From contig MCFH01000063.1 in assembly GCA_002104945.1 (NCBI GenBank), forward strand, positions 186,001 to 250,000: a stretch of DNA of 64,000 nt, read 5' to 3'. A model generated the notes under the pieces. The model was given only the letters and a program-made list of their open reading frames with translations. It ran no database searches and was not told the DNA's origin. Below, piece by piece: positions 18,772 through 38,022 of the stretch; position 1 is the first letter of the stretch, and every line of letters begins with the position of its first letter. Source of the stretch: Piromyces finnis finn (lineage: Eukaryota; Fungi; Neocallimastigomycota). Made by a program: the position numbers and the translations under genes.

Positions 18772-20129
18772 TATCTATTCATATTTATTACAATAAAATA
18801 TATTTAAATAAAGGATTAATTTAATATTATCATTAATATATTTATTTATTTATTATGATTTAATGTATTATTGATAATAAAAAATCATTATTTTCTTTGA
18901 TAATTAATTTTTCTATTAAATAGTTATTTACAATAAGTATATCAAATATAATATAATTAGGCAATACATATGGATAAATTACGTAGTTTCTCCGAGAAAA
19001 TAATTTTACTAGTTTTTGATACTTCTTTTTATTAAATATCATAAAAAATGACCGATTTTCACCTTTTGCAGATACTATTTAAAGTATTTTCAAAAAGTAT
19101 TACAAATTGAAATGATGCGTTGACCAATATATTTTTGAATAATATAATGTTTTTAATAAATAATAAATTCTATATTATTATGATGAAACAATAAATTTAA
19201 AATAAAATAAAATATGTTTTATAATTAACAAATAAATCACTCAAAACTCGAAAATAAACTCTTATTATGTTTTAAATTAAATCTTTATTATATTTTATAA
19301 TTTATTTATTATCTATTTATTGTCTTTTTATTCTCTATTTATCGTCCCCCTTTTTATGAAGAAGAATTTTATCTTCCTTTTATACATTTTCATTTATTAC
19401 ATGTATTATTATTTTTAACTATTAAATATTATTATTACTATTGTTATTATTTACTAAAATTAAAAGAATGAATTAAAATTATGTCTTAGTATTATAAAAT
19501 ATTATAGAATATTACTTATTTGATTTTCTTATTACTTCAAAATGTTTAAATTTAGAAAAATTATTATTAATTATCATTGACTATCATTAAATGTATAATA
19601 CCTTGAATAAAATAATTAAAATTTAAAATTAAAATAATATTAAAATAAAATTAAAATAAAATTAAAACAAAATTAAAATATTAAAAGTATCAATTATTAT
19701 AAGTACACACTTTATACAGAAACATAAAAGAGTTCTGTATTTTATCTTAAAATCGTTATTACTGTTCTATTTCCAGGTTTTAAGTTTATCATTTTTAGTA
19801 ATAATTACTCAATTTTCTATTTATTAATTTATAAGTTTACAAGAATTTCTAGAGAACACTTGGATAAAACACTAGAATTAATAATTTGATGTATACCATT
19901 TTATTTTTAGTTTATTTATTCATTTTTATTTATTTATTATTATTTTATTATTTTAGTACATTATTGGATTAAGTCGTTTTATTTTATTTAATAATTTATT
20001 TTATTTAATAATTTATTTTATTATTATCACTATTAGGTCATTTTTACTCAGAATTTATTATATAATAAAGAGAATATTATTTATTTAAGAAAGGGTTATA
20101 TTTTCATAAAATTATTATTCATTCATTTT

Positions 20130-21380
20130 TAAGGGTTATTATCATTTATTTTTATTATAAGTTACTATGGGTTAAGTCGTGTTTATTCAGCTAGTTTTTA
20201 TTATGTTTTTATGTGAGTAGTGTATCAAAAATGGTACAGAATTTCTATAAGTATCTTTTTATTTATTATTTGGGACAATACAACAATTATAAATAACAAA
20301 TTTATATTCTAGATGAATAGTTATTATTTTATTTTATTATTTATTTATTATTTTATTATTTTATTACATGTTTTATTATTATAAATAGGATTTATTAGGA
20401 TACATGTATTATTATTTATTCTTAAAAATAGGTATAATCTTAGAAAATAAACTAATATTATTGTTAATTCCTTCACTAAATCTAACAACAATATTATTTA
20501 TTCTTCTATTATTATCACCTTTATTTATTTTATTTATAATATAACTAATATTAACTAATAAACTCACTAAACTAAAACTAACTTTTTTTTATAAATGCGT
20601 CTTTCTCTTCCTTAAATAATTATATTTTTATCATCATTATATTAAATTATAAAAAGTTTATTTTACTTTATTAAATTATTTACAAGGTATTAATTTTGTG
20701 AAATAAATTTAATTAATAAATAATTTTATTAATAAGGTTAACAAAGAGAAAAAGTTACATTGTAAATATTACAGTTATATAATGAGATATAAGGTTATGT
20801 GATCATAAAAAATAAAATAAAAATCTCTAAAACACGTAGACATTACGTTTACAACACTTTTAATACATGTTTATGTTTTTATAAACTAGACACGTGTGTT
20901 TATAAATATTTGATATAGATAAATAAAATTATGTGTCCATAAATGTTCACAAATTTAATTTACTTATTATTACTATCGCTATATAAATTTATTAATTAAA
21001 AATATTTATATATATATATTTTATAAGGGTTATTTCATTTACCAAATATATGGATTTATTACATTTTTCTAAATATGTTGTATCAAAAATGGTACAACCT
21101 GTTTGTTTTGTTTGTACCTTTATATGGATCAATACAACTAGAATGAATAAAACAATTATTATATTATAATGAAATAACACAACAATAAAAAATGATTTTT
21201 ATATTTTATGTATTATTGTTTATATTCTTTTTATTTATCTTTGATCAATAATGTACTATTAATGATTTAAACTCTTATAATAGAAATAAATAAGTATAAT
21301 TCACTAGATTATAATCTGAATATCACTATTAATTCCTACTTAAATCTAATAATAATATTATTTATCTATCTAGTATTATC
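20130..21380. repeat. Diverged direct repeat pair (~20130-20520 vs ~21024-21380), possibly old LTR relics
   Basis: Shared anchors TAAGGGTTATT(A)TCATTT, TGTATCAAAAATGGTACA (20221/21079) and TTAATTCCT..CTAAATCTAA.AA.AATATTATTTAT, with an offset of ~860-890 bp. Confidence 0.5.
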
Positions 21381-21652
21381 ACTTATGCCTATTTTCTTAT
21401 TATTATTTCTTATTATCTTCTTATATCGTTTCTTCTCTTTTAATTTTTATTAATTCTCTTTTATTAAATACTCTTTGTTGTAATTAAGGTTTTTAGTCTT
21501 TTTAATTAATTTTATTTATAATTTTTATTTTAGTTATTGCTATAAGCGTTATTAATTAAATCAATAATTGTTAGCTTATAAATTTATATATTAAATTTTT
21601 ATTAAACCTAAAATACTTAAAGTAGAATTATTATTAGTAAAATTAAAGGTTA

Positions 21653-22298
21653 TGTCAAGAGTTAGAGTGGATTTAGAATTATAATTAAGTCTATTAGGTT
21701 AGGATAGGCTTAATTATATAGTAAATAATAAATTTTTATAAATAAAAGAGTAATAAATATTATAGTTTTTTAAGAAATATTTTATTTAATTTTTATAATA
21801 TAAGTAAATGATAATTATTAATTTTAAATATTGAATTTACTATATAAAAATGAGTATAATAATCTCACAAAGAACTTCTTAAAGTTGTTCTTTGTTCAAC
21901 TTATTTATACTTCATTTTTAATATAATGTTGATATTAATAAAGTATAATAATAATATAATTTAAGTTATACATGTATAATAATATAAATATAAATATTAA
22001 TAAAATATAATAGTAATAATAATATAATTTTCTTTAAATATCGATATTAATAAGTTGTTAAAAATAATATTAATAATTATTTAAATGAATCTTATTTTAC
22101 TAATTGGTTTGTTTAATGTTAATTAATTGTTACACTCTATTTATCTCCGGATAATAAATAGCTTTCCAATTAATATTTATATTAAATAAACTATTATTAG
22201 TAAAATATTATTAAATTAATATTTTAATTAATTTAACTAATAATTCAAAATTATGAAATTTCATGAAATGTCAAATTTCATGAATTGTGATTTTGACA
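21653..22298. mobile_element. Solo LTR, family A (646 bp)
   Basis: Ends TGTCAAG...TTTTGACA; 5-bp TSD GGTTA at 21648-21652 and 22299-22303; near-identical inverted copy at 37317-37962. Confidence 0.9.
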
Positions 22299-22303
22299 GG
22301 TTA

Positions 22304-23435
22304 TGTTAAGTTTTTGGGTTTGGTTATGCGGCCAGGTCAGAATGTTATTAATTATATAGTAAAAATGTTTTTTAAGAAATTAAATTTAATTATAAAATAA
22401 CACCTTAAACTCCCAAATGAAAAATGAAAAATTTATATTTACTTTAAAATAACTTTTTATAAATTTTTTATTTATTTAATAATAATAATATAAATGATAT
22501 TATAAGTAACTATATAATTAAGATTATAACTATAATCTTTACAAAGAATTAAAATCGAATTCAATTCATTCTCTTTTATATTCTTTGTTCAGATTATTAA
22601 ATTGATATTAATAAGAATAAAGTATTACATGTAATATATTAGTAATATAATTAAATAAGTAATAAGATTGTTTGTTTGTTTGTTTGTTTGTCATGACATA
22701 AAATAAAATAAACATATGATTAATCATTTAAACAGTTGATCCTAATTAGTAATTATAAAAACTATTCAATTAATAATTCATCATTATTAATTGATATTAC
22801 CATAACATATTTGTTATAATTAAATAATTATTATTTTCAAAATTATTTCTAATAAAACTTGCCGTTAACCTATTTTATAATAATTAAGATTATTTAATTT
22901 ATAGGTGTTAACTGTTACACCTAGATGGGTCTAGTTCTATTTTTAGTAACAATCGTTATCATTAATTAAATTAATATAACTAAAATTCCTATTGATATAT
23001 TTTTAATTTCATCAAGTCATAAGAAATATTTATGATCCATACTTGATATCATATTGATTTTAATTTACCTAATAAAATCTTTAAATGATCATAACTTCCT
23101 TAAATGATCAGTTAGAAGGACCGCGATTGTACCAAATTGTAGCTTTCTTCCTAAGCTTTCCAATAAACCTAGTTTCATCACCGTAGCACTTACAGCCGTA
23201 GCGATCGTTTTTGGCGAGTTACACCTTATTTCGTACTTGCTTATTTTTGGTTAAGGGTTATAGTGTATTGATATTAAATTTTTGAAATCATAACCCTTTC
23301 ACTGAATCAAAATTTAAAAGGTGACTTTTAAAAGTGTTTTAAAATAATTATTGAAATTACTTAATTATAATTATTATGTTTAATTAATTATAGATATTAT
23401 CTGAATTTGTTTTAAATCCAGTTAATATCTTCACA
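22304..23435 (-). mobile_element. Solo LTR, family B (1132 bp)
   Basis: TGTTAAG...CTTCACA; flanked by GGTTA (22299-22303, 23436-23440); ~99% identical to the LTRs of the adjacent full element. Confidence 0.93.
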
Positions 23436-24976
23436 GGTTATGTTAAGTTTTTGGGTTTGGTTATGCGGCCAGGTCAGAATGTTATTAATTATATAGTAAA
23501 AATGTTTTTTAAGAAATTAAATTTAATTATAAAATAACACCTTAAACTCCCAAATGAAAAATGAAAAATTTATATTTACTTTAAAATAACTTTTTATAAA
23601 TTTTTTATTTATTTAATAATAATATAAATGATATTATAAGTAACTATATAATTAAGATTATAACTATAATCTTTACAAAGAATTAAAATCGAATTCAATT
23701 CATTCTCTTTTATATTCTTCGTTCAGATTATTAAATTGATATTAATAAGAATAAAGTATTACATATAATATATTAGTAATATAATTAAATAAGTAATAAG
23801 ATTGTTTGTTTGTTTGTTTGTTTGTTTGTCATGACATAAAATAAAATAAACATATGATTAATCATTTAAACAGTTGATCCTAATTAGTAATTATAAAAAC
23901 TATTCAATTAATAATTCATCATTATTAATTGATATTACCATAACATATTTGTTATAACTAAATAATTATTATTTTCAAAATTATTTCTAATAAAACTTGC
24001 CGTTAACCTATTTTATAATAATTAAGATTATTTAATTTATAGGTATTAACTGTTACACCTAAATGGGTCTAGTTCTATTTTTAGTAACAATCGTTATCAT
24101 TAATTAAATTAATATAACTAAAATTCCTATTGATATATTTTTAATTTCATCAAGTCATAAGAAATATTTATGATCCATACTTGATATCATATTGATTTTA
24201 ATTTACCTAATAAAATCTTTAAATGATCATAACTTCCTTAAATGATCAGTTAGAAGGACCGCGATTGTACCAAATTGTAGCTTTCTTCCTAAGCTTTCCA
24301 ATAAACCTAGTTTCATCACCGTAGCACTTACAGCCGTAGCGATCGTTTTTGGCGAGTTACACCTTATTTCGTACTTGCTTATTTTTGGTTAAGGGTTATA
24401 GTATATTGATATTAAATTTTTGAAATCATAACCCTTTCACTGAATCAAAATTTAAAAGGTGACTTTTAAAAGTGTTTTAAAATAATTATTGAAATTATTT
24501 AATTATAATTATTATGTTTAATTAATTATAGATATTATCTGAATTTGTTTTAAATCCAGTTAATATCTTCACAACGCCCTCCCTAGGAATTCGTATTCCA
24601 GACGAATTCTATGAACTGGAGCGAAAAGTAAAAATTTTTGATTTTTAAAAAAATTTTTTCGAGAGGAAGTAATAATTTCAAAAGGTCACTTGGCCATTGT
24701 GAGATTTTTGAAATTTCACTTTTTGAAAAATTTTCTTGTAGGTAAAATTTTAATAATAAAATTGATACTGCAGATTTTGAATATGAAAATAAAAATAAAA
24801 AATAATAAAGTTTTAATATGATAATTGAAAAATATTCGGTGTAAAAATTTTTGAAATGTTGAAATTTCAAAATTTTGTGATGAGTTAAATTTCGAAATTT
24901 AGTTGTTATAAAAATATTTTGTAAATGGTGTAAAAGTTATTTTAAGAGAATTATTGACTTATTAATATTATTTTAA

Positions 24977-25197
24977 TTAATTATATGCTATAGAAGCATA
25001 ATGTCGTCCACTTTTTAAATATTTTTGATAAATGTATTGATTACGTGGATTGTCTTCTACTTCACTTGCTGGTACCCAATTATAAGCGGAACGGTATTTG
25101 TATCGAATTTTATATTCATATCGTTGTTGTTTATAATTTGTACGGAATCCAGATATTTCCACTATATCTTTTATTGATTCTGGATCCGCAGTTCTAT
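24977..25197 (-). CDS. Chromodomain-like C-terminal extension of integrase, out of frame with pol by 1 nt
   Basis: RILNRTADPESIKDIVEISGFRTNYKQQRYEYKIRYKYRSAYNWVPASEVEDNP resembles the chromodomain pattern (I..R....EY.V.W....TW.P...). One extra T in the TTTT run just before the pol stop would fuse it in frame (EF-LNRT). Confidence 0.65.
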
Positions 25198-28100
25198 TTA
25201 AAATTCTTTTGGAGTTGATCTATAAGGTTCCAACTCAGATACATGAAATATTGGATAGTGTTTGGGAAAAGGTGATTTTTTGATATCGATTTCATAATTG
25301 TTATTTCTCAAAACTTGAGTTATTTTATATGGACCATATTTACAAGGAGCTAATTTGGAACTATTTTCAATATTTAGAGAAGGTGGGGCTTGAATCCAAA
25401 CTAAATCATCAATTTTAAATTTTGGAGCTTCTAAACGACTTTTATCCACTCTTCTTTTATACAACTCTTTGGAGCGTAGTAACACTTCTTTTATGTGGTT
25501 GAATGCATCATTAACGTTTTGAACTAGTTTATGATTAATATTACATTGTGGTAATAGGGTCATTTCATCCATCGGAGGGTGGAAACCATAATTAATGAAG
25601 AATGGTGTTTCTTTGGTTGATTCATTAACAGCGTTGTTATAGGCGAATTCTGCAAGTGGAAGCCAATCAACCCAGTCGTCATGATAGAAAGACTTGGAAT
25701 AACATCTAAGATACTGTTCAATAAAAGAATTTGACCTCTCGACCTGTCCAACAGTTTCATGGTGGTCAGTAGTAGCTATTCTTGGATGAATATATAATAA
25801 ATCCAAAAATTCGAGCCAAACATCACTTGTAAATTGTGAGCCTCTATCAGTATATAGGTCATAAGGGAGACCATGTAAACGATATACATTGTTCAAAAAA
25901 GCTTTTGCAGTTTGTGCTGCGTTTGGAACTTGTTTAAACGGCACTAAGTGAATCATTTTAGAAAAGCGGTCAACCACTACCATAATTACGGTGTACCCTT
26001 TAGACTCAGGAAGGCCACAAAGAAAGTCAATTTCTATAGATTTCCATGGACGTTCTGGAGTATCTAAAGGTTGTAATTTTCCATATTTCCGATGTCTAGT
26101 TACTTTATTTCTTGTGCATGTCTCACAAGAATTAACAAATTTAGTGACATCATCCTTAATTTTAGGCCACCAAAAATTTCGAGTTATCAATTCTAAAGTC
26201 CTTTTTATACCAAGATGTCCAGCAGAGGGTTGTTCATGATATTTCATAAGAACATCTAAACGTAGTTTCTCAGGGATATAAACTAAGTTATTATATAAAA
26301 TAAGATTATTTTTTAATTCAAACTTGTTCATTTTCCTAAATGGTCTATAAGCCTTTTGGTCATTATGTGGGCTGAAATATAGCATAATATCCTTAGCAGT
26401 TTCGTCGTCCTTTAAGTATTGAATAACTTGTTCCAAGAAGTTACTCATAATACCAATGAAACTTGGTATTAGTTTTACATTTTTTGAGTCTAAAATATAT
26501 TCTGGCTTTTCTTCATAAGTCCTATCCATGTAGTCAGGTCTGCGAGATAGACAATCAGGTTTACCATTCTTACGACCTTGTCTGTATATAAGTTCAAAGT
26601 CGTATTCATGAAAGAAAAGGTGCCAACGATGTTGTCTTTGATTACCTACCTTTCCTCCAAGAGTATAAAGTAAATTTCTATGATCAGTGTAAACTTTTAT
26701 TTTATATTTAGCACCAAGAAGAAGGTGCCTCCAAGTAGAGAAAGAATCCTTAATGGCTAATAGTTCTTTATCTGTTATAGAATAATTAACTTCAGAACTA
26801 CTTAGACTTCTGGAGTAGTAAGCAACAGGATGTAGACGATTTTCTGAATCATATTGAGAAAGTATAGAACCGATAGCAACATTACTTGCATCACATTCTA
26901 AAATATATTGTTTTTGAGGATCAGGATGTGATAAAATAGGTGCTGAAGTTAAACGCGTTTTTAAAATGTTAAATGAGGATTCACATTCTGTGGACCATTT
27001 GAACTTTGCATTCTTTTTTGTTAGGTTGTGGAGGGGTTTAGCCAAGTCTGCAAAATTCATTACAAAGCGTCTATAGTAGTTACAAAGACCTAAAAATCTT
27101 TGTACATCCTTAACTGTAGTAGGAATAGGCCAATTTTTGATTGACTCTATCTTTTTTGGGTCGGTAGCAATTCCTGAACCTGAAATAACATATCCTAAGA
27201 ATTCAACTTGTGGTTTGTCAAATTCACATTTAGGAAGTTTAGCATATAAATTATTTTCTAATAGTTTAGAAAGAACTTCACGTACATGTTGGTGGTGTTC
27301 TTCTAAGGTTTTTGAAAATATAAGAATATCATCCAAATAGAGAATAACAGATTTTTCCAAGAAAGGTCTGAGAACAGAATTTATAAATGCCTGAAAAGTA
27401 GCAGGAGCGTTACGTAAACCAAATGGCATCACTAAATATTCATAGTGACCAAACTTTGTGCGAAAAGCAGTTTTATATTCATCACCATTTCTTATTCTAA
27501 CTAAATTATAAGCAGAGCGTAAGTCGAGCTTGGTGAAATACTTTGCACCTTTGACACGTTCTATAATGTCGGTAATAAGTGGTATTGGGTAGGAGTTACG
27601 TATCGTTACAGAATTGAGTTTTTTATAATCAATACAAACTCTAAGAGTACCATCTTTCTTTTTCTGAAATACCACTGGATATCCTGCAGGTGATTCGGAT
27701 GGTCTAATAAAGCCTTTTTCTAAATTTTCCTTGATATACTCTTCTAAAACTTTTGATTCTTCTTCTGATAAGGGATAGATGGGACCATAGTGAAGAGTAG
27801 CATCTTTTTCTAGTACTATTTTACAATCTGTAATTCTATGTGGTGGTAGTTTATCAGCTTCTTGTTTGCTGAAAACTTTTGCCAAATCTCGATAGGGTTT
27901 TGGAATATCCTCAATAGTATGTTCTTCTAAATTGCTTACTTCTTCTGGTTTTTCGGACAAAAAAGTATGAATTAAATAATTATAATTATATCTATCATAA
28001 TTATTTTTATTTAATATAACTTTTCTAAAAAATTTGGAACGTTTAGGGTTAAATTTGTGAAATCGACCATTTTTCTTCTTACTAAAGGTTTTAGATCTGA

Positions 28101-28797
28101 AATAAAAATTATGAATTTTATTTTTTAAATTATAAAAATTGGTGGAATAATTTTTATTTTTATTTTTTGTGTTATTTACACCTGTAGAAGTGGTAGGTGT
28201 AACATTTATGTCATTTCTATTATAAGAAATGAATTGTTCTAATTTTAAAAATTTAGTAGCATGCTTCATATTGAATTTCTTTCTGTTAAAATCATATTTT
28301 AAATTTGAATATAAATAATTTTTATTATAATTATAATGAATTTCATATTTGGACATGAATATATTTCCAAATAATAAATCTGTCGGAATATAATCCGCTA
28401 GTAAAAATTTTTCTTTGAAATTGATGAAATGGAATTTATTGTTGATAAATAGTTTTAACTGAAAGTTTAGGTTGATATATTCATCAAGTTCAATTGAAGT
28501 ACCACTGATACCTTGTACAGTGATAACATTATTAATTTTATGAGGATGTAATTGTAATGTACGTAATAGTTTGTACGACATAAAATTACAATAAGATCCA
28601 CTATCTAATAGTGATGTACATGCAATTTTATTATGTACATTATTTGTACCTCCATTATTGGATAATACATATGTATTAAAAGTAAAAAACGTTGAAGGTA
28701 ATGTATTATCTTTGTTGATAGTGGGAAAAGTGTAGTTTAATATTTTTGTATTCGAGTGGTGATGGGACTTCAATGGAAGTCCTTTATTTAGTTTTTT
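25198..28797 (-). CDS. pol: pol polyprotein (protease, reverse transcriptase, RNase H, integrase)
   Basis: LLDSGS protease; YLDDILIFS RT; LECDAS RNase H; H..SAGH...CETC zinc motif; DDE core (SIEIDF, YTDRG, GQVER); GPY motif. Domain order is Ty3/gypsy. ORF lies in the -1 frame relative to gag. Confidence 0.97.
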   Translation of the reverse strand, partial: KKLNKGLPLKSHHHSNTKILNYTFPTINKDNTLPSTFFTFNTYVLSNNGGTNNVHNKIACTSLLDSGSYCNFMSYKLLRTLQLHPHKINNVITVQGISGTSIELDEYINLNFQLKLFINNKFHFINFKEKFLLADYIPTDLLFGNIFMSKYEIHYNYNKNYLYSNLKYDFNRKKFNMKHATKFLKLEQFISYNRNDINVTPTTSTGVNNTKNKNKNYSTNFYNLKNKIHNFYFRSKTFSKKKNGRFHKFNPKRSKFFRKVILNKNNYDRYNYNYLIHTFLSEKPEEVSNLEEHTIEDIPKPYRDLAKVFSKQEADKLPPHRITDCKIVLEKDATLHYGPIYPLSEEESKVLEEYIKENLEKGFIRPSESPAGYPVVFQKKKDGTLRVCIDYKKLNSVTIRNSYPIPLITDIIERVKGAKYFTKLDLRSAYNLVRIRNGDEYKTAFRTKFGHYEYLVMPFGLRNAPATFQAFINSVLRPFLEKSVILYLDDILIFSKTLEEHHQHVREVLSKLLENNLYAKLPKCEFDKPQVEFLGYVISGSGIATDPKKIESIKNWPIPTTVKDVQRFLGLCNYYRRFVMNFADLAKPLHNLTKKNAKFKWSTECESSFNILKTRLTSAPILSHPDPQKQYILECDASNVAIGSILSQYDSENRLHPVAYYSRSLSSSEVNYSITDKELLAIKDSFSTWRHLLLGAKYKIKVYTDHRNLLYTLGGKVGNQRQHRWHLFFHEYDFELIYRQGRKNGKPDCLSRRPDYMDRTYEEKPEYILDSKNVKLIPSFIGIMSNFLEQVIQYLKDDETAKDIMLYFSPHNDQKAYRPFRKMNKFELKNNLILYNNLVYIPEKLRLDVLMKYHEQPSAGHLGIKRTLELITRNFWWPKIKDDVTKFVNSCETCTRNKVTRHRKYGKLQPLDTPERPWKSIEIDFLCGLPESKGYTVIMVVVDRFSKMIHLVPFKQVPNAAQTAKAFLNNVYRLHGLPYDLYTDRGSQFTSDVWLEFLDLLYIHPRIATTDHHETVGQVERSNSFIEQYLRCYSKSFYHDDWVDWLPLAEFAYNNAVNESTKETPFFINYGFHPPMDEMTLLPQCNINHKLVQNVNDAFNHIKEVLLRSKELYKRRVDKSRLEAPKFKIDDLVWIQAPPSLNIENSSKLAPCKYGPYKITQVLRNNNYEIDIKKSPFPKHYPIFHVSELEPYRSTPKEF
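28765..28797 (-). promoter_or_regulatory. -1 programmed ribosomal frameshift signal (slippery A AAA AAC plus hairpin)
   Basis: - strand: TCA AAA AAC TAA ATAAA GGACTTC-CATT-GAAGTCC, i.e. a heptamer at the gag stop, 8-nt spacer and a perfect 7-bp stem. Confidence 0.8.
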
Positions 28798-29813
28798 GAA
28801 CTAATTTTTTGAGCTTTATAATTGTTGTTATTGTAATTATTATTATATTTTTGGAAGTTATTGTTGTTATTGTTGTTGTTGTTGTTGTATGATCTGTGGT
28901 GGTTGAAATGTGAATTTCTTTTCTTGTTAGATTTAGAGTTGGAAGACTGGTTAATCTTATTCTTTGTAGAAAGAGAACTTTCGATCAAAATACATCTAGT
29001 TATAATGGACTCCATGGTGGTTGGAAATACCTCCATCTTTTCAATTTCTTCCTGATATTTGGGATGTAAACCATTATAAAAGATTAAAGATAATACTTCT
29101 TCATTCCATTTAAATTGTTGTGAAAGAGAGCGGAATTCCTCGATATAATCATTTATTTTACCATATTGTTGTTTTAAACGCATTATTTTGATTTTAGCTA
29201 TCTTGTAACTAGCAACATTTGAGAAAGCAATTCTTAGTCCATCCAACAATTCTTGCATGGTAGATGGATAAATATTATCCTTGTACTTGGCAAGATACCA
29301 ATTTCTAGCAGCATCACGAAGACGGGATTGTACAAAATTAATTTTTGTTTCTTCTGGTAAAGTTCGATTTGGTAGAGTTTTGAAAGTATCTTCACATAAT
29401 TGACAAAACAAATCGGTATCACTAGTCTTACCGGAGAACATACCTGGATCTGGCACTTGAGTGATTGGAGTAGCAAAACGGCCTCTCATGATAACATCAT
29501 GATCCAAATCAAATCTTGTTGAAGTAGATTCATCATCTCTAAAGACAGTAGGTCTTGGAGTAGCTATCCTATCATAATTGGTATGTAACAATGGTTGTTC
29601 ATCTTCATTCTGAGCAGTTTGATTATTATTCATATTGGTTAATACACTCATGATTTCATTTAAACGATTATTCACATCATTGGAAAAATTTTGAAAATCT
29701 TCACGGAAAACCAAATTTTCATTGATACCCTCAATGATATCCTTGGCAGTCTGAGTAGCATCCTCTCTTAGTTGGTTTACCTCGTCTGGGAAATTAGGAA
29801 CCGGAGTGAACAT
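28788..29813 (-). CDS. gag: Gag (retrotransposon capsid-like), 341 aa
   Basis: VPDPGMFSG, KINFVQSRLRDAARNWY, LKQ..GKINDYIEEFR, IFYNGL motifs typical of Ty3/gypsy Gag; sits between the 5-prime LTR and pol. Confidence 0.92.
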   Translation of the reverse strand: MFTPVPNFPDEVNQLREDATQTAKDIIEGINENLVFREDFQNFSNDVNNRLNEIMSVLTNMNNNQTAQNEDEQPLLHTNYDRIATPRPTVFRDDESTSTRFDLDHDVIMRGRFATPITQVPDPGMFSGKTSDTDLFCQLCEDTFKTLPNRTLPEETKINFVQSRLRDAARNWYLAKYKDNIYPSTMQELLDGLRIAFSNVASYKIAKIKIMRLKQQYGKINDYIEEFRSLSQQFKWNEEVLSLIFYNGLHPKYQEEIEKMEVFPTTMESIITRCILIESSLSTKNKINQSSNSKSNKKRNSHFNHHRSYNNNNNNNNNNFQKYNNNYNNNNYKAQKISSKN

Positions 29814-29837
29814 TCTAAAGTAGCCACTAAACAGCGG

Positions 29838-29848
29838 GTAAAGATTAT
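29838..29848 (-). promoter_or_regulatory. Primer-binding site of self-priming (Tf1) type
   Basis: - strand ATAATCTTTAC immediately follows the LTR with no TGG tRNA-type start; its exact complement GTAAAGATTAT lies in the LTR at 30084-30074. Confidence 0.75.
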
Positions 29849-31044
29849 TGTTAAGTTTTTGGGTTTGGTTATGCGGCCAGGTCAGAATGTTATTAATTAT
29901 ATAGTAAAAATGTTTTTTAAGAAATTAAATTTAATTATAAAATAACACCTTAAACTCCCAAATGAAAAATGAAAAATTTATATTTACTTTAAAATAACTT
30001 TTTATAAATTTTTTATTTATTTAATAATAATATAAATGATATTATAAGTAACTATATAATTAAGATTATAACTATAATCTTTACAAAGAATTAAAATCGA
30101 ATTCAATTCATTCTCTTTTATATTCTTCGTTCAGATTATTAAATTGATATTAATAAGAATAAAGTATTACATGTAATATATTAGTAATATAATTAAATAA
30201 GTAATAAGATTGTTTGTTTGTTTGTTTGTTTGTCATGACATAAAATAAAATAAACATATGATTAATCATTTAAACAGTTGATCCTAATTAGTAATTATAA
30301 AAACTATTCAATTAATAATTCATCATTATTAATTGATATTACCATAACATATTTGTTATAATTAAATAATTATTATTTTCAAAATTATTTCTAATAAAAC
30401 TTGCCGTTAACCTATTTTATAATAATTAAGATTATTTAATTTATAGGTATTAACTGTTACACCTAAATGGGTCTAGTTCTATTTTTAGTAACAATCGTTA
30501 TCATTAATTAAATTAATATAACTAAAATTCCTATTGATATATTTTTAATTTCATCAAGTCATAAGAAATATTTATGATCCATACTTGATATCATATTGAT
30601 TTTAATTTACCTAATAAAATCTTTAAATGATCATAACTTCCTTAAATGATCAGTTAGAAGGACCGCGATTGTACCAAATTGTAGCTTTCTTCCTAAGCTT
30701 TCCAATAAACCTAGTTTCATCACCGTAGCACTTACAGCCGTAGCGATCGTTTTTGGCGAGTTACACCTTATTTCGTACTTGCTTATTTTTGGTTAAGGGT
30801 TATAGTATATTGATATTAAATTTTTGAAATCATAACCCTTTCACTGAATCAAAATTTAAAAGGTGACTTTTAAAAGTGTTTTAAAATAATTATTGAAATT
30901 ATTTAATTATAATTATTATGTTTAATTAATTATAGATATTATCTGAATTTGTTTTAAATCCAGTTAATATCTTCACAGGTTAAATTGGAATTCCTATGCT
31001 CTTACATTTTTCTGAATCAGTCGTACCAAAAAAACAATAGCGAG

Positions 31045-31115
31045 GCGTTAATAGTATAGAGGTAGAATATTTGCCTTCCAAGCAAATGGCCCGGGTTCGA
31101 TTCCCGGTTAACGCA
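31045..31115 (+). tRNA. tRNA-Gly (anticodon TCC), intronless
   Basis: GCGTTAA acceptor stem pairs with TTAACGC; anticodon arm TTTGC-CTTCCAA-GCAAA; T-loop GGTTCGATTCC; T-run terminator just downstream. Confidence 0.97.
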
Positions 31116-37005: not shown

Positions 37006-37316
37006 ATCCAATGTCTATAAACTTGTAAAAATTTAATACGCCTCAATTTATTTAACCACGTTGTCTCATGATTATTTTAATTTATTTTATGGATAATTCT
37101 AATAAATAAAATTAAACTTTATTTTAATAATTAGTTTTTCCACTTTCAAAAAAAAGTTTTTCCTAATTCATCAAATGGTGCTTCTCTACCTATGAATAGA
37201 ATAGTTTAAAGGTATTTTATCTCTATTTAAATAAATAATCTTTTATAGTATATTTTTTTTATTTGATAGGAATAGGAATAGGCGTAAACTTTAAATTTTA
37301 GTAAAAGTTTATAAAT

Positions 37317-37962
37317 TGTCAAAATCACAATTCATGAAATTTGACATTTCATGAAATTTCATAATTTTGAATTATTAGTTAAATTAATTAAAATATTAAT
37401 TTAATAATATTTTACTAATAATAGTTTATTTAATATAAATATTAATTGGAAAGCTATTTATTATCCGGAGATAAATAGAGTGTAACAATTAATTAACATT
37501 AAACAAACCAATTAGTAAAATAAGATTCATTTAAATAATTATTAATATTATTTTTAACAACTTATTAATATCGATATTTAAAGAAAATTATATTATTATT
37601 ACTATTATATTTTATTAATATTTATATTTATATTATTATACATGTATAACTTAAATTATATTATTATTATACTTTATTAATATCAACATTATATTAAAAA
37701 TGAAGTATAAATAAGTTGAACAAAGAACAACTTTAAGAAGTTCTTTGTGAGATTATTATACTCATTTTTATATAGTAAATTCAATATTTAAAATTAATAA
37801 TTATCATTTACTTATATTATAAAAATTAAATAAAATATTTCTTAAAAAACTATAATATTTATTACTCTTTTATTTATAAAAATTTATTATTTACTATATA
37901 ATTAAGCCTATCCTAACCTAGTAGACTTAATTATAGTTCTAAATCCACTCTAACTCTTGACA
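37317..37962. mobile_element. Solo LTR, family A, inverted relative to the 21653 copy
   Basis: TGTCAAAA...CTTGACA, 646 bp; TSD TAAAT at 37312-37316 and 37963-37967; two substitutions noticed versus the 21653 copy. Confidence 0.92.
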
Positions 37963-38022
37963 TAAATTGAAAGAATTTAAATATTATATTTTTATATATT
38001 TAAAATTGTAACATTATAAAAA

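Follow-up and report, generated by a model that had tools for sequence, protein, structure and literature searches.

The stretch analysed here, a 64,000-nucleotide piece of Piromyces finnis contig MCFH01000063.1 (hereafter the window), carries a tRNA-Gly(TCC) gene with a stack of long terminal repeat (LTR) retrotransposon insertions upstream of it, from two families that we call A and B, all separated by the same five bases, GGTTA. We consider it highly probable that this locus records repeated, position-specific integration of Ty3/gypsy elements, with the target-site duplication falling ~62-66 bp upstream of a gene transcribed by RNA polymerase III (Pol III). The duplications are real and the insertions independent, and genome-wide the distance is constant, the target genes are varied and the orientation is biased. 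That Ty3/gypsy elements target Pol III genes in yeasts and dictyostelids is established (PMC5911963); what is new here is the host lineage, the element lineage, the coexistence of two exact registers and the strict orientation of family B. A literature search returned nothing on such Pol III-gene targeting in Neocallimastigomycota.

The window carries two stacks on one tRNA gene, a proximal stack of three LTRs (M, N and G) and, inside G, a distal stack composed of A, B and B. The distal stack is laid out as follows (window coordinates).

21648-21652: first GGTTA, within the left part of LTR G
21653-22298, plus strand: solo LTR-A, 646 bp, TGTCAAG...TTTGACA, with TG...CA ends and GGTTA on either side
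22299-22303: GGTTA common to LTR-A and solo LTR-B
22304-23435, plus strand: solo LTR-B, 1132 bp, TGTTAAG...CTTCACA, placed in subfamily B1 by alignment and subfamily-diagnostic sites
23436-23440: GGTTA common to solo LTR-B and full element B
23441-30977: full element B, 7537 bp, with TG...CA ends, coded on the minus strand
23441-24573, minus strand: 3′ LTR of full element B, subfamily B2
29849-30977, minus strand: 5′ LTR of full element B, on the tRNA-gene side
30978-30982: fourth GGTTA, closest to the tRNA, read directly
31045-31115, plus strand: tRNA-Gly(TCC), the anchor of both stacks (ARAGORN; Rfam RF00005, 67 bits)

The spacer between the last GGTTA and the tRNA gene is 62 bp (30983-31044), and element B, with its coding sequence on the minus strand and its 5′ LTR adjacent to the gene, is transcribed away from the tRNA. 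An earlier, sequence-only reading had described four GGTTA copies, TG...CA ends, the 62-bp spacer and the tRNA-Gly(TCC) gene, and direct reading confirmed all of these coordinates. The same reading held that the only intact element is the one nearest the tRNA; element B is indeed full-length and tRNA-proximal, but its pol frame is broken and the word "intact" is too strong.

Evidence that the four GGTTA copies arose by integration comes from copies of LTR G elsewhere in the genome. In at least ten G paralogs, the stretch left of the stack (21300-21652) and the 67 bp to its right match adjoining DNA and have precisely one 5-bp GGTTA in common, as on contig C176, where the two matches span 95564-95915 and 95911-95965. 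Because an uninterrupted G has a single GGTTA, the four in the window are target-site duplications from three insertions, and because the paralogs carry this GGTTA empty, it is no hot spot in itself. Public reads, available as short Logan contigs from one sample that break inside the LTRs, re-showed the empty-site form of G alone. The two B insertions can be told apart in an alignment of 41 LTR-B copies, where the solo LTR-B bears the B1 states (a TAA indel and several substitutions) common to ~20 dispersed copies, with only 2 differences private to itself, and both LTRs of the full element bear the B2 states common to ~10 copies. The two LTRs of the full element differ from each other by 2 substitutions and one 4-bp indel, and LTR-A has at least 40 genomic copies at 98-100% identity. 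Since solo B and full B differ in subfamily and LTR-A differs in family, these sequence comparisons indicate, as the economical reading, that A, solo B and full B are three separate integrations. The proposal that three successive integrations hit the same 5 bp is thus upheld by the empty-site G paralogs, the distinct B1 and B2 subfamilies and the separate family A.

The distance to the tRNA gene is preserved across the genome, which comprises 56.46 Mb in 232 contigs and holds hundreds of candidate copies of both LTRs. We scored 40 of ~370 LTR-B candidates and 40 of ~260 LTR-A candidates, and fetched 60 loci around LTR copies together with 20 chosen from tRNA genes alone (tRNA-Arg); all carry L-numbers below. 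In 13 of 14 non-redundant cases the edge of LTR-B lies 63-69 bp from the first tRNA base (median 66), upstream of genes for Gly, Cys, Ala, Ser, Trp and Arg tRNAs. The corresponding gaps for LTR-A are 64, 66 and 68 bp, and two further families, C and D, lie at 65 and 66 bp. The spread is therefore ~3 bp around 66 bp, with no sign of the broad, nucleosome-periodic window typical of Ty1, and the chance of a random insertion falling in such a 7-bp window is <1/1000, given at most ~2900 tRNA candidates in 56 Mb. The duplication measures 5 bp here and in dozens of copies elsewhere, and its sequence varies (TCACT, TTATT, ATATA, AATTG, ATTAT, TCATT, TTTCA, TAATT, CACTT, TCGTG, GGATT and others); together with the empty GGTTA paralogs, this variety argues that a position is recognised and not GGTTA. 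Shared-duplication stacks recur at L025/L026, L001, L012, L013, L016 and L038. From the window alone it had been anticipated that other copies would lie beside Pol III-type genes, with a sharp peak of distances and varied target-site duplications, and among the scored copies this is what we find; that two LTR families share a base-precise Pol III-gene register (A at 64-68 bp, B at 63-69 bp) and land further upstream than Ty3, by ~50 bp, also stood.

Family B is consistently oriented, with the same end (the 5′ LTR) toward the gene in every tRNA or tRNA-like case, and LTR-A is found in both orientations. Of the LTR-B and LTR-A copies without an adjacent tRNA, most either lie directly next to an LTR that shares their duplication (L001, L007, L012, L013, L016) or lie 49-55 bp from the CA end of an LTR behind which another insertion follows.

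Some copies have been rearranged after insertion. Mismatched duplications flank the LTR-B copies at L018, L023, L003, L004, L006, L010, L014 and L021. L018 and L023, both on contig C156, form a reciprocal TAACA/TATTT pair in inverted orientation, and an unrearranged element on another contig (L027) keeps TAACA/TAACA. We read the mismatches as signs of ectopic LTR-LTR recombination and of an inversion. At L024 (contig C101, ~625774-627034), GTTAT comes directly after LTR-B, then a second copy of the terminal 60 bp of this LTR, and then GTTAT again.

The 62-bp spacer is not unique DNA: it opens with the terminal 46 bp of LTR G, and G leads to the second, proximal stack.

19113-20227, plus strand: LTR M, oldest recognisable member of the proximal stack, ending ...GTGTATCA; left boundary approximate, no clear duplication on the left
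20228-20232: AAAAA duplication common to M and N, read directly
20233-21084, plus strand: LTR N, TGGTACAG...GTTGTATCA, second insertion in the proximal register
21085-21089: AAAAA duplication common to N and G, read directly
21090-21652, plus strand: left 563 bp of LTR G, starting TGGTACAACC, holding the first GGTTA and hosting the distal stack
30983-31028, plus strand: last 46 bp of LTR G, ending ...GTCGTACCA (GTACCA) at 31028
31029-31033: AAAAA duplication of G, matching 21085-21089; 11 bp (31034-31044) separate it from the mature tRNA 5′ end

All three LTRs are repeated in the genome. LTR M has at least 40 copies at 92-96% identity, aligning to window positions 19110-20257; copies of N align to 20262-20696 and 20952-21086, that is, around a nested LTR; and G (21300-21652) has at least 11 copies at 94-99% identity, whose left ends align at ~21087-21089. 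At the right end, homology among G copies stops exactly at the CA at 31028 in several copies (query positions 1-51). The end of G lies 16 bp before the tRNA, with N and M stacked behind it, so that G occupies the Ty3-type edge position (~10-17 bp before the mature tRNA) and A and B do not. The LTR nested in N is a 255-bp TG...CA solo LTR (20697-20951) with AATTT duplications, 133 bp from the end of N and outside both tRNA registers. N also has a TCATT 46-51 bp from its end, which is empty here and occupied by LTR-B in paralogs L009 and L017; its vacancy fits G having arrived before A and B.

The proximal register is general. In the tRNA-first sample of 20 loci, a repeat ending in CA lies at -11 to -22 of almost every tRNA gene, and a distal-register LTR is present too at about a quarter of them. 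The sampled tRNA genes from L004 to L080 nearly all have a ...TATCA, ...TACCA or ...TTACA end 11-18 bp upstream; at tRNA-Ser genes the repeat end is at -18 and the distal register at 68-69 bp, versus 65-67 bp. In 11 cases 49-52 bp lie between LTR-B and the CA end of its proximal LTR, and where that end is displaced (-11 at L045, -12 at L066, -22 at L064) the distal insertion is still ~66 bp from the tRNA. At L066, moreover, LTR-C lies at 65 bp and there is no recognisable LTR-like CA end at -11 to -18. Because the 66-bp gap survives displacement of the proximal end, the reference point is the gene, or a complex on the gene, and not the resident LTR.

The tRNA genes themselves are very numerous. 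A first-look count gives ~2900 tRNA-like candidates, a rough figure, in the 56-Mb genome, many of which score identically, and this suggests a massive amplification of tRNA genes linked to LTR clusters. Tandem tRNA pairs occur at L008, L029, L063, L066 and L080 (Gly-Thr 5 bp, Ser-Met 8 bp and Glu-Arg ~10 bp apart), and such closely spaced pairs may be co-transcribed. At L067-L069 the Glu gene of a tandem pair has an internal deletion, and at L076 an LTR end replaces most of the Glu gene.

Targets may not be confined to canonical tRNA genes. The window holds a second LTR-A.

37317-37962, minus strand: second solo LTR-A (repeat D10), with duplication ATTTA/TAAAT at 37312-37316 and 37963-37967

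This copy lies 59-60 bp upstream of the head of a tRNA-derived short interspersed nuclear element (SINE) that starts at 38022 and contains an A-box-like TGGTTGTTAAGGCG and a B-box-like GGTTCGACCTC. The SINE is present in two copies, from 36449 and 38022, 1574 bp apart and 99% identical over 300 bp. Elsewhere, at L015, L030, L032, L037, L048, L049, L051 and L052, LTR-A or LTR-B lies 71-77 bp upstream of a tRNA-like unit (GTCTTAGTGGTTAGTA..., a B-box-like GAGTTCGAAACC, then a T-run), with proximal-type LTR ends ~19-23 bp upstream of it. The unit sits ~27 bp inside an LTR starting TGTAACGAATC, which a purine tract precedes in L049 and L051. An Rfam search of the unit gave no match at E <= 0.01, and it is known from its box A/B-like motifs and T-run. 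Both positions agree with the gene as the reference point, and the SINE and the tRNA-like unit are putative Pol III-type targets.

Elements A and B have the coding and structural organisation of Ty3/gypsy (Metaviridae) elements, with direct TG...CA LTRs, a 5-bp duplication, gag (seen in B), pol in the order protease (seen in A), reverse transcriptase, RNase H and integrase, and a polypurine tract. Four internal features of full element B can be placed.

24575-24584, minus strand: polypurine tract, AGGGAGGGCG on the minus strand, one base from the 3′ LTR
25198-28773, minus strand: pol open reading frame, 1191 amino acids from the first start (Pfam), frame broken at the 3′ end
28788-29813, minus strand: gag open reading frame, 341 amino acids (Pfam Retrotrans_gag, E 8.6e-10)
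29838-29848, minus strand: 11-nt primer-binding sequence of self-priming type, with its exact complement at 30074-30084 inside the LTR

In pol of element B, Pfam finds RVT_1, RT_RNaseH, Integrase_H2C2 and rve in that order, and then a Tf2-1-type SH3 domain; the full family-A element in L035, which encodes protease, reverse transcriptase, RNase H and integrase, has the same Pfam set plus RVP_2. The frame break in the window's copy lies at ~25198-25200, just after ...STPKEF, and leaves the last 74 codons out of frame, whereas L027, L028 and L032 each have a single pol open reading frame of 1274 codons. The Pol sequences of A and B are 62% identical, and the two families agree in their polypurine tract region and in the bases that directly follow the 5′ LTR; on these sequences they are sister Ty3/gypsy families, from which it follows that the shared targeting was probably inherited and is not convergent. 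The polypurine tract is conserved in all full B copies, with a variant form in A. None of the ten tRNA species sampled has a 3′ end that would pair with a primer-binding site after the 5′ LTR. The 11-nt self-complement of B is equalled in 73 of 20000 shuffles, family A (L035) has a 10-nt self-complement with compensating changes relative to B, and in both families the self-complementary site lies 213-236 nt from the LTR end. Priming in A and B thus appears to be of the Tf1 self-priming type.

The tail of the integrase offers a candidate for the targeting determinant. Pfam assigns it to no family, with no Chromo even at E 10, yet the tail is conserved in ~30 relatives (from metagenomes and an Orpinomyces genome, the source of the nearest named one) that likewise lack PF00385, and it aligns with the chromodomain of more distant relatives (hhalign 96%), which, at ~40% identity, carry a called chromodomain. 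An AlphaFold model of the tail (mean predicted local distance difference test score, pLDDT, 84.6) consists of two small beta-barrels. Its best match in the PDB is the Ty3 integrase in the Ty3-TFIIIB-tDNA complex (7Q5B, E 4e-4), followed by retroviral integrase C-terminal domains (CTDs) and by chromodomains (MPP8, cpSRP43). In Ty3, the integrase CTD contacts TBP and a vestigial chromodomain contacts Brf1, which fixes the insertion site (PMC8632968). We propose, from the alignment and the model, that the A/B integrase tail comprises an SH3-like CTD and a degenerate chromodomain, and by analogy with Ty3 it may dock on TFIIIB or on a neighbouring Pol III factor.

A mechanism that would generate the locus can be outlined. 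M, N and G would first have inserted in turn at a Ty3-like site, with AAAAA 12-16 bp before the tRNA, after which A, then the B1 element, then the B2 element would each have hit the GGTTA of G at the distal distance. Each insertion would re-duplicate GGTTA and use the copy at tRNA distance, so that older insertions would be pushed outward, and the two older elements (A and B1) would later have collapsed to solo LTRs. The order of insertion that we infer, N, G, A, B1, B2, follows from the newest insertion taking the duplication copy at the correct distance and not from direct dating. At the protein level, the integrase CTD and vestigial chromodomain would dock on Pol III pre-initiation factors, likeliest on TFIIIB from its upstream side, which would place the intasome ~50 bp beyond the Ty3-like site. 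With a Pol III start close to the proximal register, as in Ty3, the distal duplication would be ~46-55 bp upstream of that start. Judged by the yeast footprint, this position would coincide with the upstream boundary of TFIIIB or fall slightly outside it, and the earlier reading's placement of the insertions roughly at the distal edge of TFIIIB is plausible.

Other explanations of the locus have to be set against repeated position-specific integration. If what the integrases recognised were GGTTA, or else some motif of LTR G, with the nearby tRNA gene being incidental, one would understand why the four junctions in the window are all GGTTA and why some duplications (TAAAA, ATATA) recur within the same host LTR families. 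However, most duplications differ, at least ten G paralogs carry GGTTA empty, the tRNA gap is constant across unrelated flanking sequence, and the recurrence of some is accounted for by one host LTR lying equally far from different tRNA genes. The varied duplications, the empty paralogs and the conserved gap largely refute a specificity for GGTTA, to which we give next to no credence. An array built from one insertion by tandem duplication, unequal crossing-over or LTR gene conversion draws on the evident activity of LTR-LTR recombination (the mismatched duplications and the reciprocal TAACA/TATTT pair) and on the partial tandem repeat of an LTR-B end at L024. Yet LTR-A, being of a different family, cannot derive from B, the solo and the full B fall in two subfamilies, each with markers common to many dispersed copies, and every junction consists of an exact LTR end and a 5-bp duplication. 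Local tandem duplication is rejected on the subfamily markers and on family A, and we regard this origin as a whole as highly improbable. An assembly mis-join of repeat copies from different loci is suggested by the fact that all parts are high-copy repeats whose junctions are bridged by none of the short read contigs, but it is very hard to credit, because mis-joins in repeats would not yield perfect TG...CA ends with exact local 5-bp copies, the same architecture occurs on many contigs with other duplications, and the three LTR-B copies differ at specific sites and hence are not collapsed.

A further alternative accepts the positional targeting and relocates its cause, to the first upstream nucleosome, to a Pol III subunit in the manner of Ty1 and AC40, or to the proximal LTR end. 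The tight distance from LTR-B to the proximal CA end speaks for the last of these, and Ty1 provides a precedent for the others in its use of Pol III subunits and nucleosome surfaces (PMC5911963). However, the 66-bp tRNA gap is kept when the proximal end moves to -11, -12 or -22, LTR-C occupies its register in L066 without an LTR-like CA end in the proximal interval, and a spread of ~3 bp is far tighter than the periodic window of Ty1, which extends up to 1 kb. Positioning from the proximal LTR end is rejected, as the distal gap follows the tRNA when the LTR end shifts; the alternative taken together is unlikely.

Repeated position-specific integration upstream of Pol III genes remains our reading of the locus, and a number of observations weigh against it or against its parts. 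The scored copies number 40 of the several hundred candidates in each family, one LTR-B lies at 97 bp from its tRNA (L075), and no recognisable Pol III gene is within reach of L002, L005, L009, L019, L028 and L056/L057. None of the short public contigs spans the A/B/B junctions. Shared duplications by themselves give no order of insertion, which needs targeting measured from the tRNA. As for the protein, Pfam calls no chromodomain in the integrase tail, the TFIIIB tether is an analogy joined to a modest fold match (template modelling score, TM, ~0.35-0.38), and the superposition of the tail on 7Q5B has a high root-mean-square deviation, with the orientation of the domains differing.

tRNA-gene targeting is a textbook "safe-haven" strategy, known mostly from work on budding and fission yeasts and on dictyostelids. 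The present case would extend it to an early-diverging fungal lineage, with many LTR families that use two exact registers, ~50 bp apart, at the same genes. It offers a natural experiment for learning how integrases gauge their distance from TFIIIB, and it is the second instance in which a degenerate chromodomain may have been put to new use in Pol III targeting. With newer copies displacing older ones, the stacks, if truly formed in this way, would be readable chronologically as ordered fossil records, usable for dating waves of transposition. The stacks also account for much of the repetitive make-up of the DNA near the tRNA genes, which are very numerous, and for the trouble in assembling it; integrases of this kind could guide tools for safe-site insertion in anaerobic fungi, which are hard to engineer. 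A broader proposal, which we put forward tentatively and would not yet favour, is that in anaerobic gut fungi two mechanistically distinct, base-precise docking modes operate on one Pol III pre-initiation complex, a Ty3-like start-site mode and, ~50 bp further out, a mode on the upstream face of TFIIIB; the latter would belong to a chromovirus-derived, self-priming lineage whose chromodomain might have turned into a TFIIIB-binding ruler independently of Ty3 and DGLT-A.

Among known systems, A and B show the features of the class that targets Pol III genes (Ty3, DGLT-A, TRE5, Tj1), namely a fixed distance, varied tRNA identities and no target sequence. The Tf1/sushi group, with Tf1 and Tf2 of Schizosaccharomyces pombe, shares with A and B the Tf2-1-type SH3 domain and an 11-nt self-priming complementarity. 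Tf1 targets promoters of RNA polymerase II and not Pol III genes. Ty3 of Saccharomyces cerevisiae, also a Ty3/gypsy element, integrates with base precision in a TFIIIB-dependent manner, and its CTD and vestigial chromodomain are those to which we liken the A/B tail. Its register is 1-4 bp upstream of the Pol III start, a position comparable with that of M, N and G; Ty3 is tRNA-primed, whereas A and B are apparently self-primed like Tf1 and insert ~50 bp further upstream. Ty1, Ty2 and Ty4 (Ty1/copia) resemble A and B in lying upstream of Pol III genes and further out than Ty3, but they belong to another superfamily and use a ~1-kb nucleosome-periodic window and a tether between integrase and AC40, without single-site precision. 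In dictyostelids, TRE5-A of Dictyostelium discoideum inserts 40-54 bp upstream of tRNA genes, beyond the region covered by TFIIIB, and its ORF1 protein binds TFIIIB subunits (PMC5911963). TRE5-A is, however, a non-LTR element that moves by target-primed reverse transcription and has no integrase, and its window is wider and its distance shorter than those of A and B. Skipper-2 of Dictyostelium is chromovirus-derived, has a diverged chromodomain and acquired tRNA-gene targeting (PMC5006619), but it inserts downstream of tRNA genes over a broad range of 8-136 bp. The closest parallel in distance is offered by Dictyostelium lacteum, in which DGLT-A.1 lies 63-64 bp (4 copies) and DGLT-A.2 55-65 bp (2 copies) upstream of the mature tRNA (Spaller et al. 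2016, PMC5006619). These Ty3/gypsy LTR elements fall in the same distance class as A and B, but they occur as a handful of copies in an amoebozoan host, belong to a different Ty3/gypsy lineage defined as chromodomain-less, and have been described with neither shared-duplication stacks nor a strict orientation bias. In the setting of A and B, in contrast, candidate copies run into the hundreds, there are at least four families, and a register at -12/-16 exists alongside.

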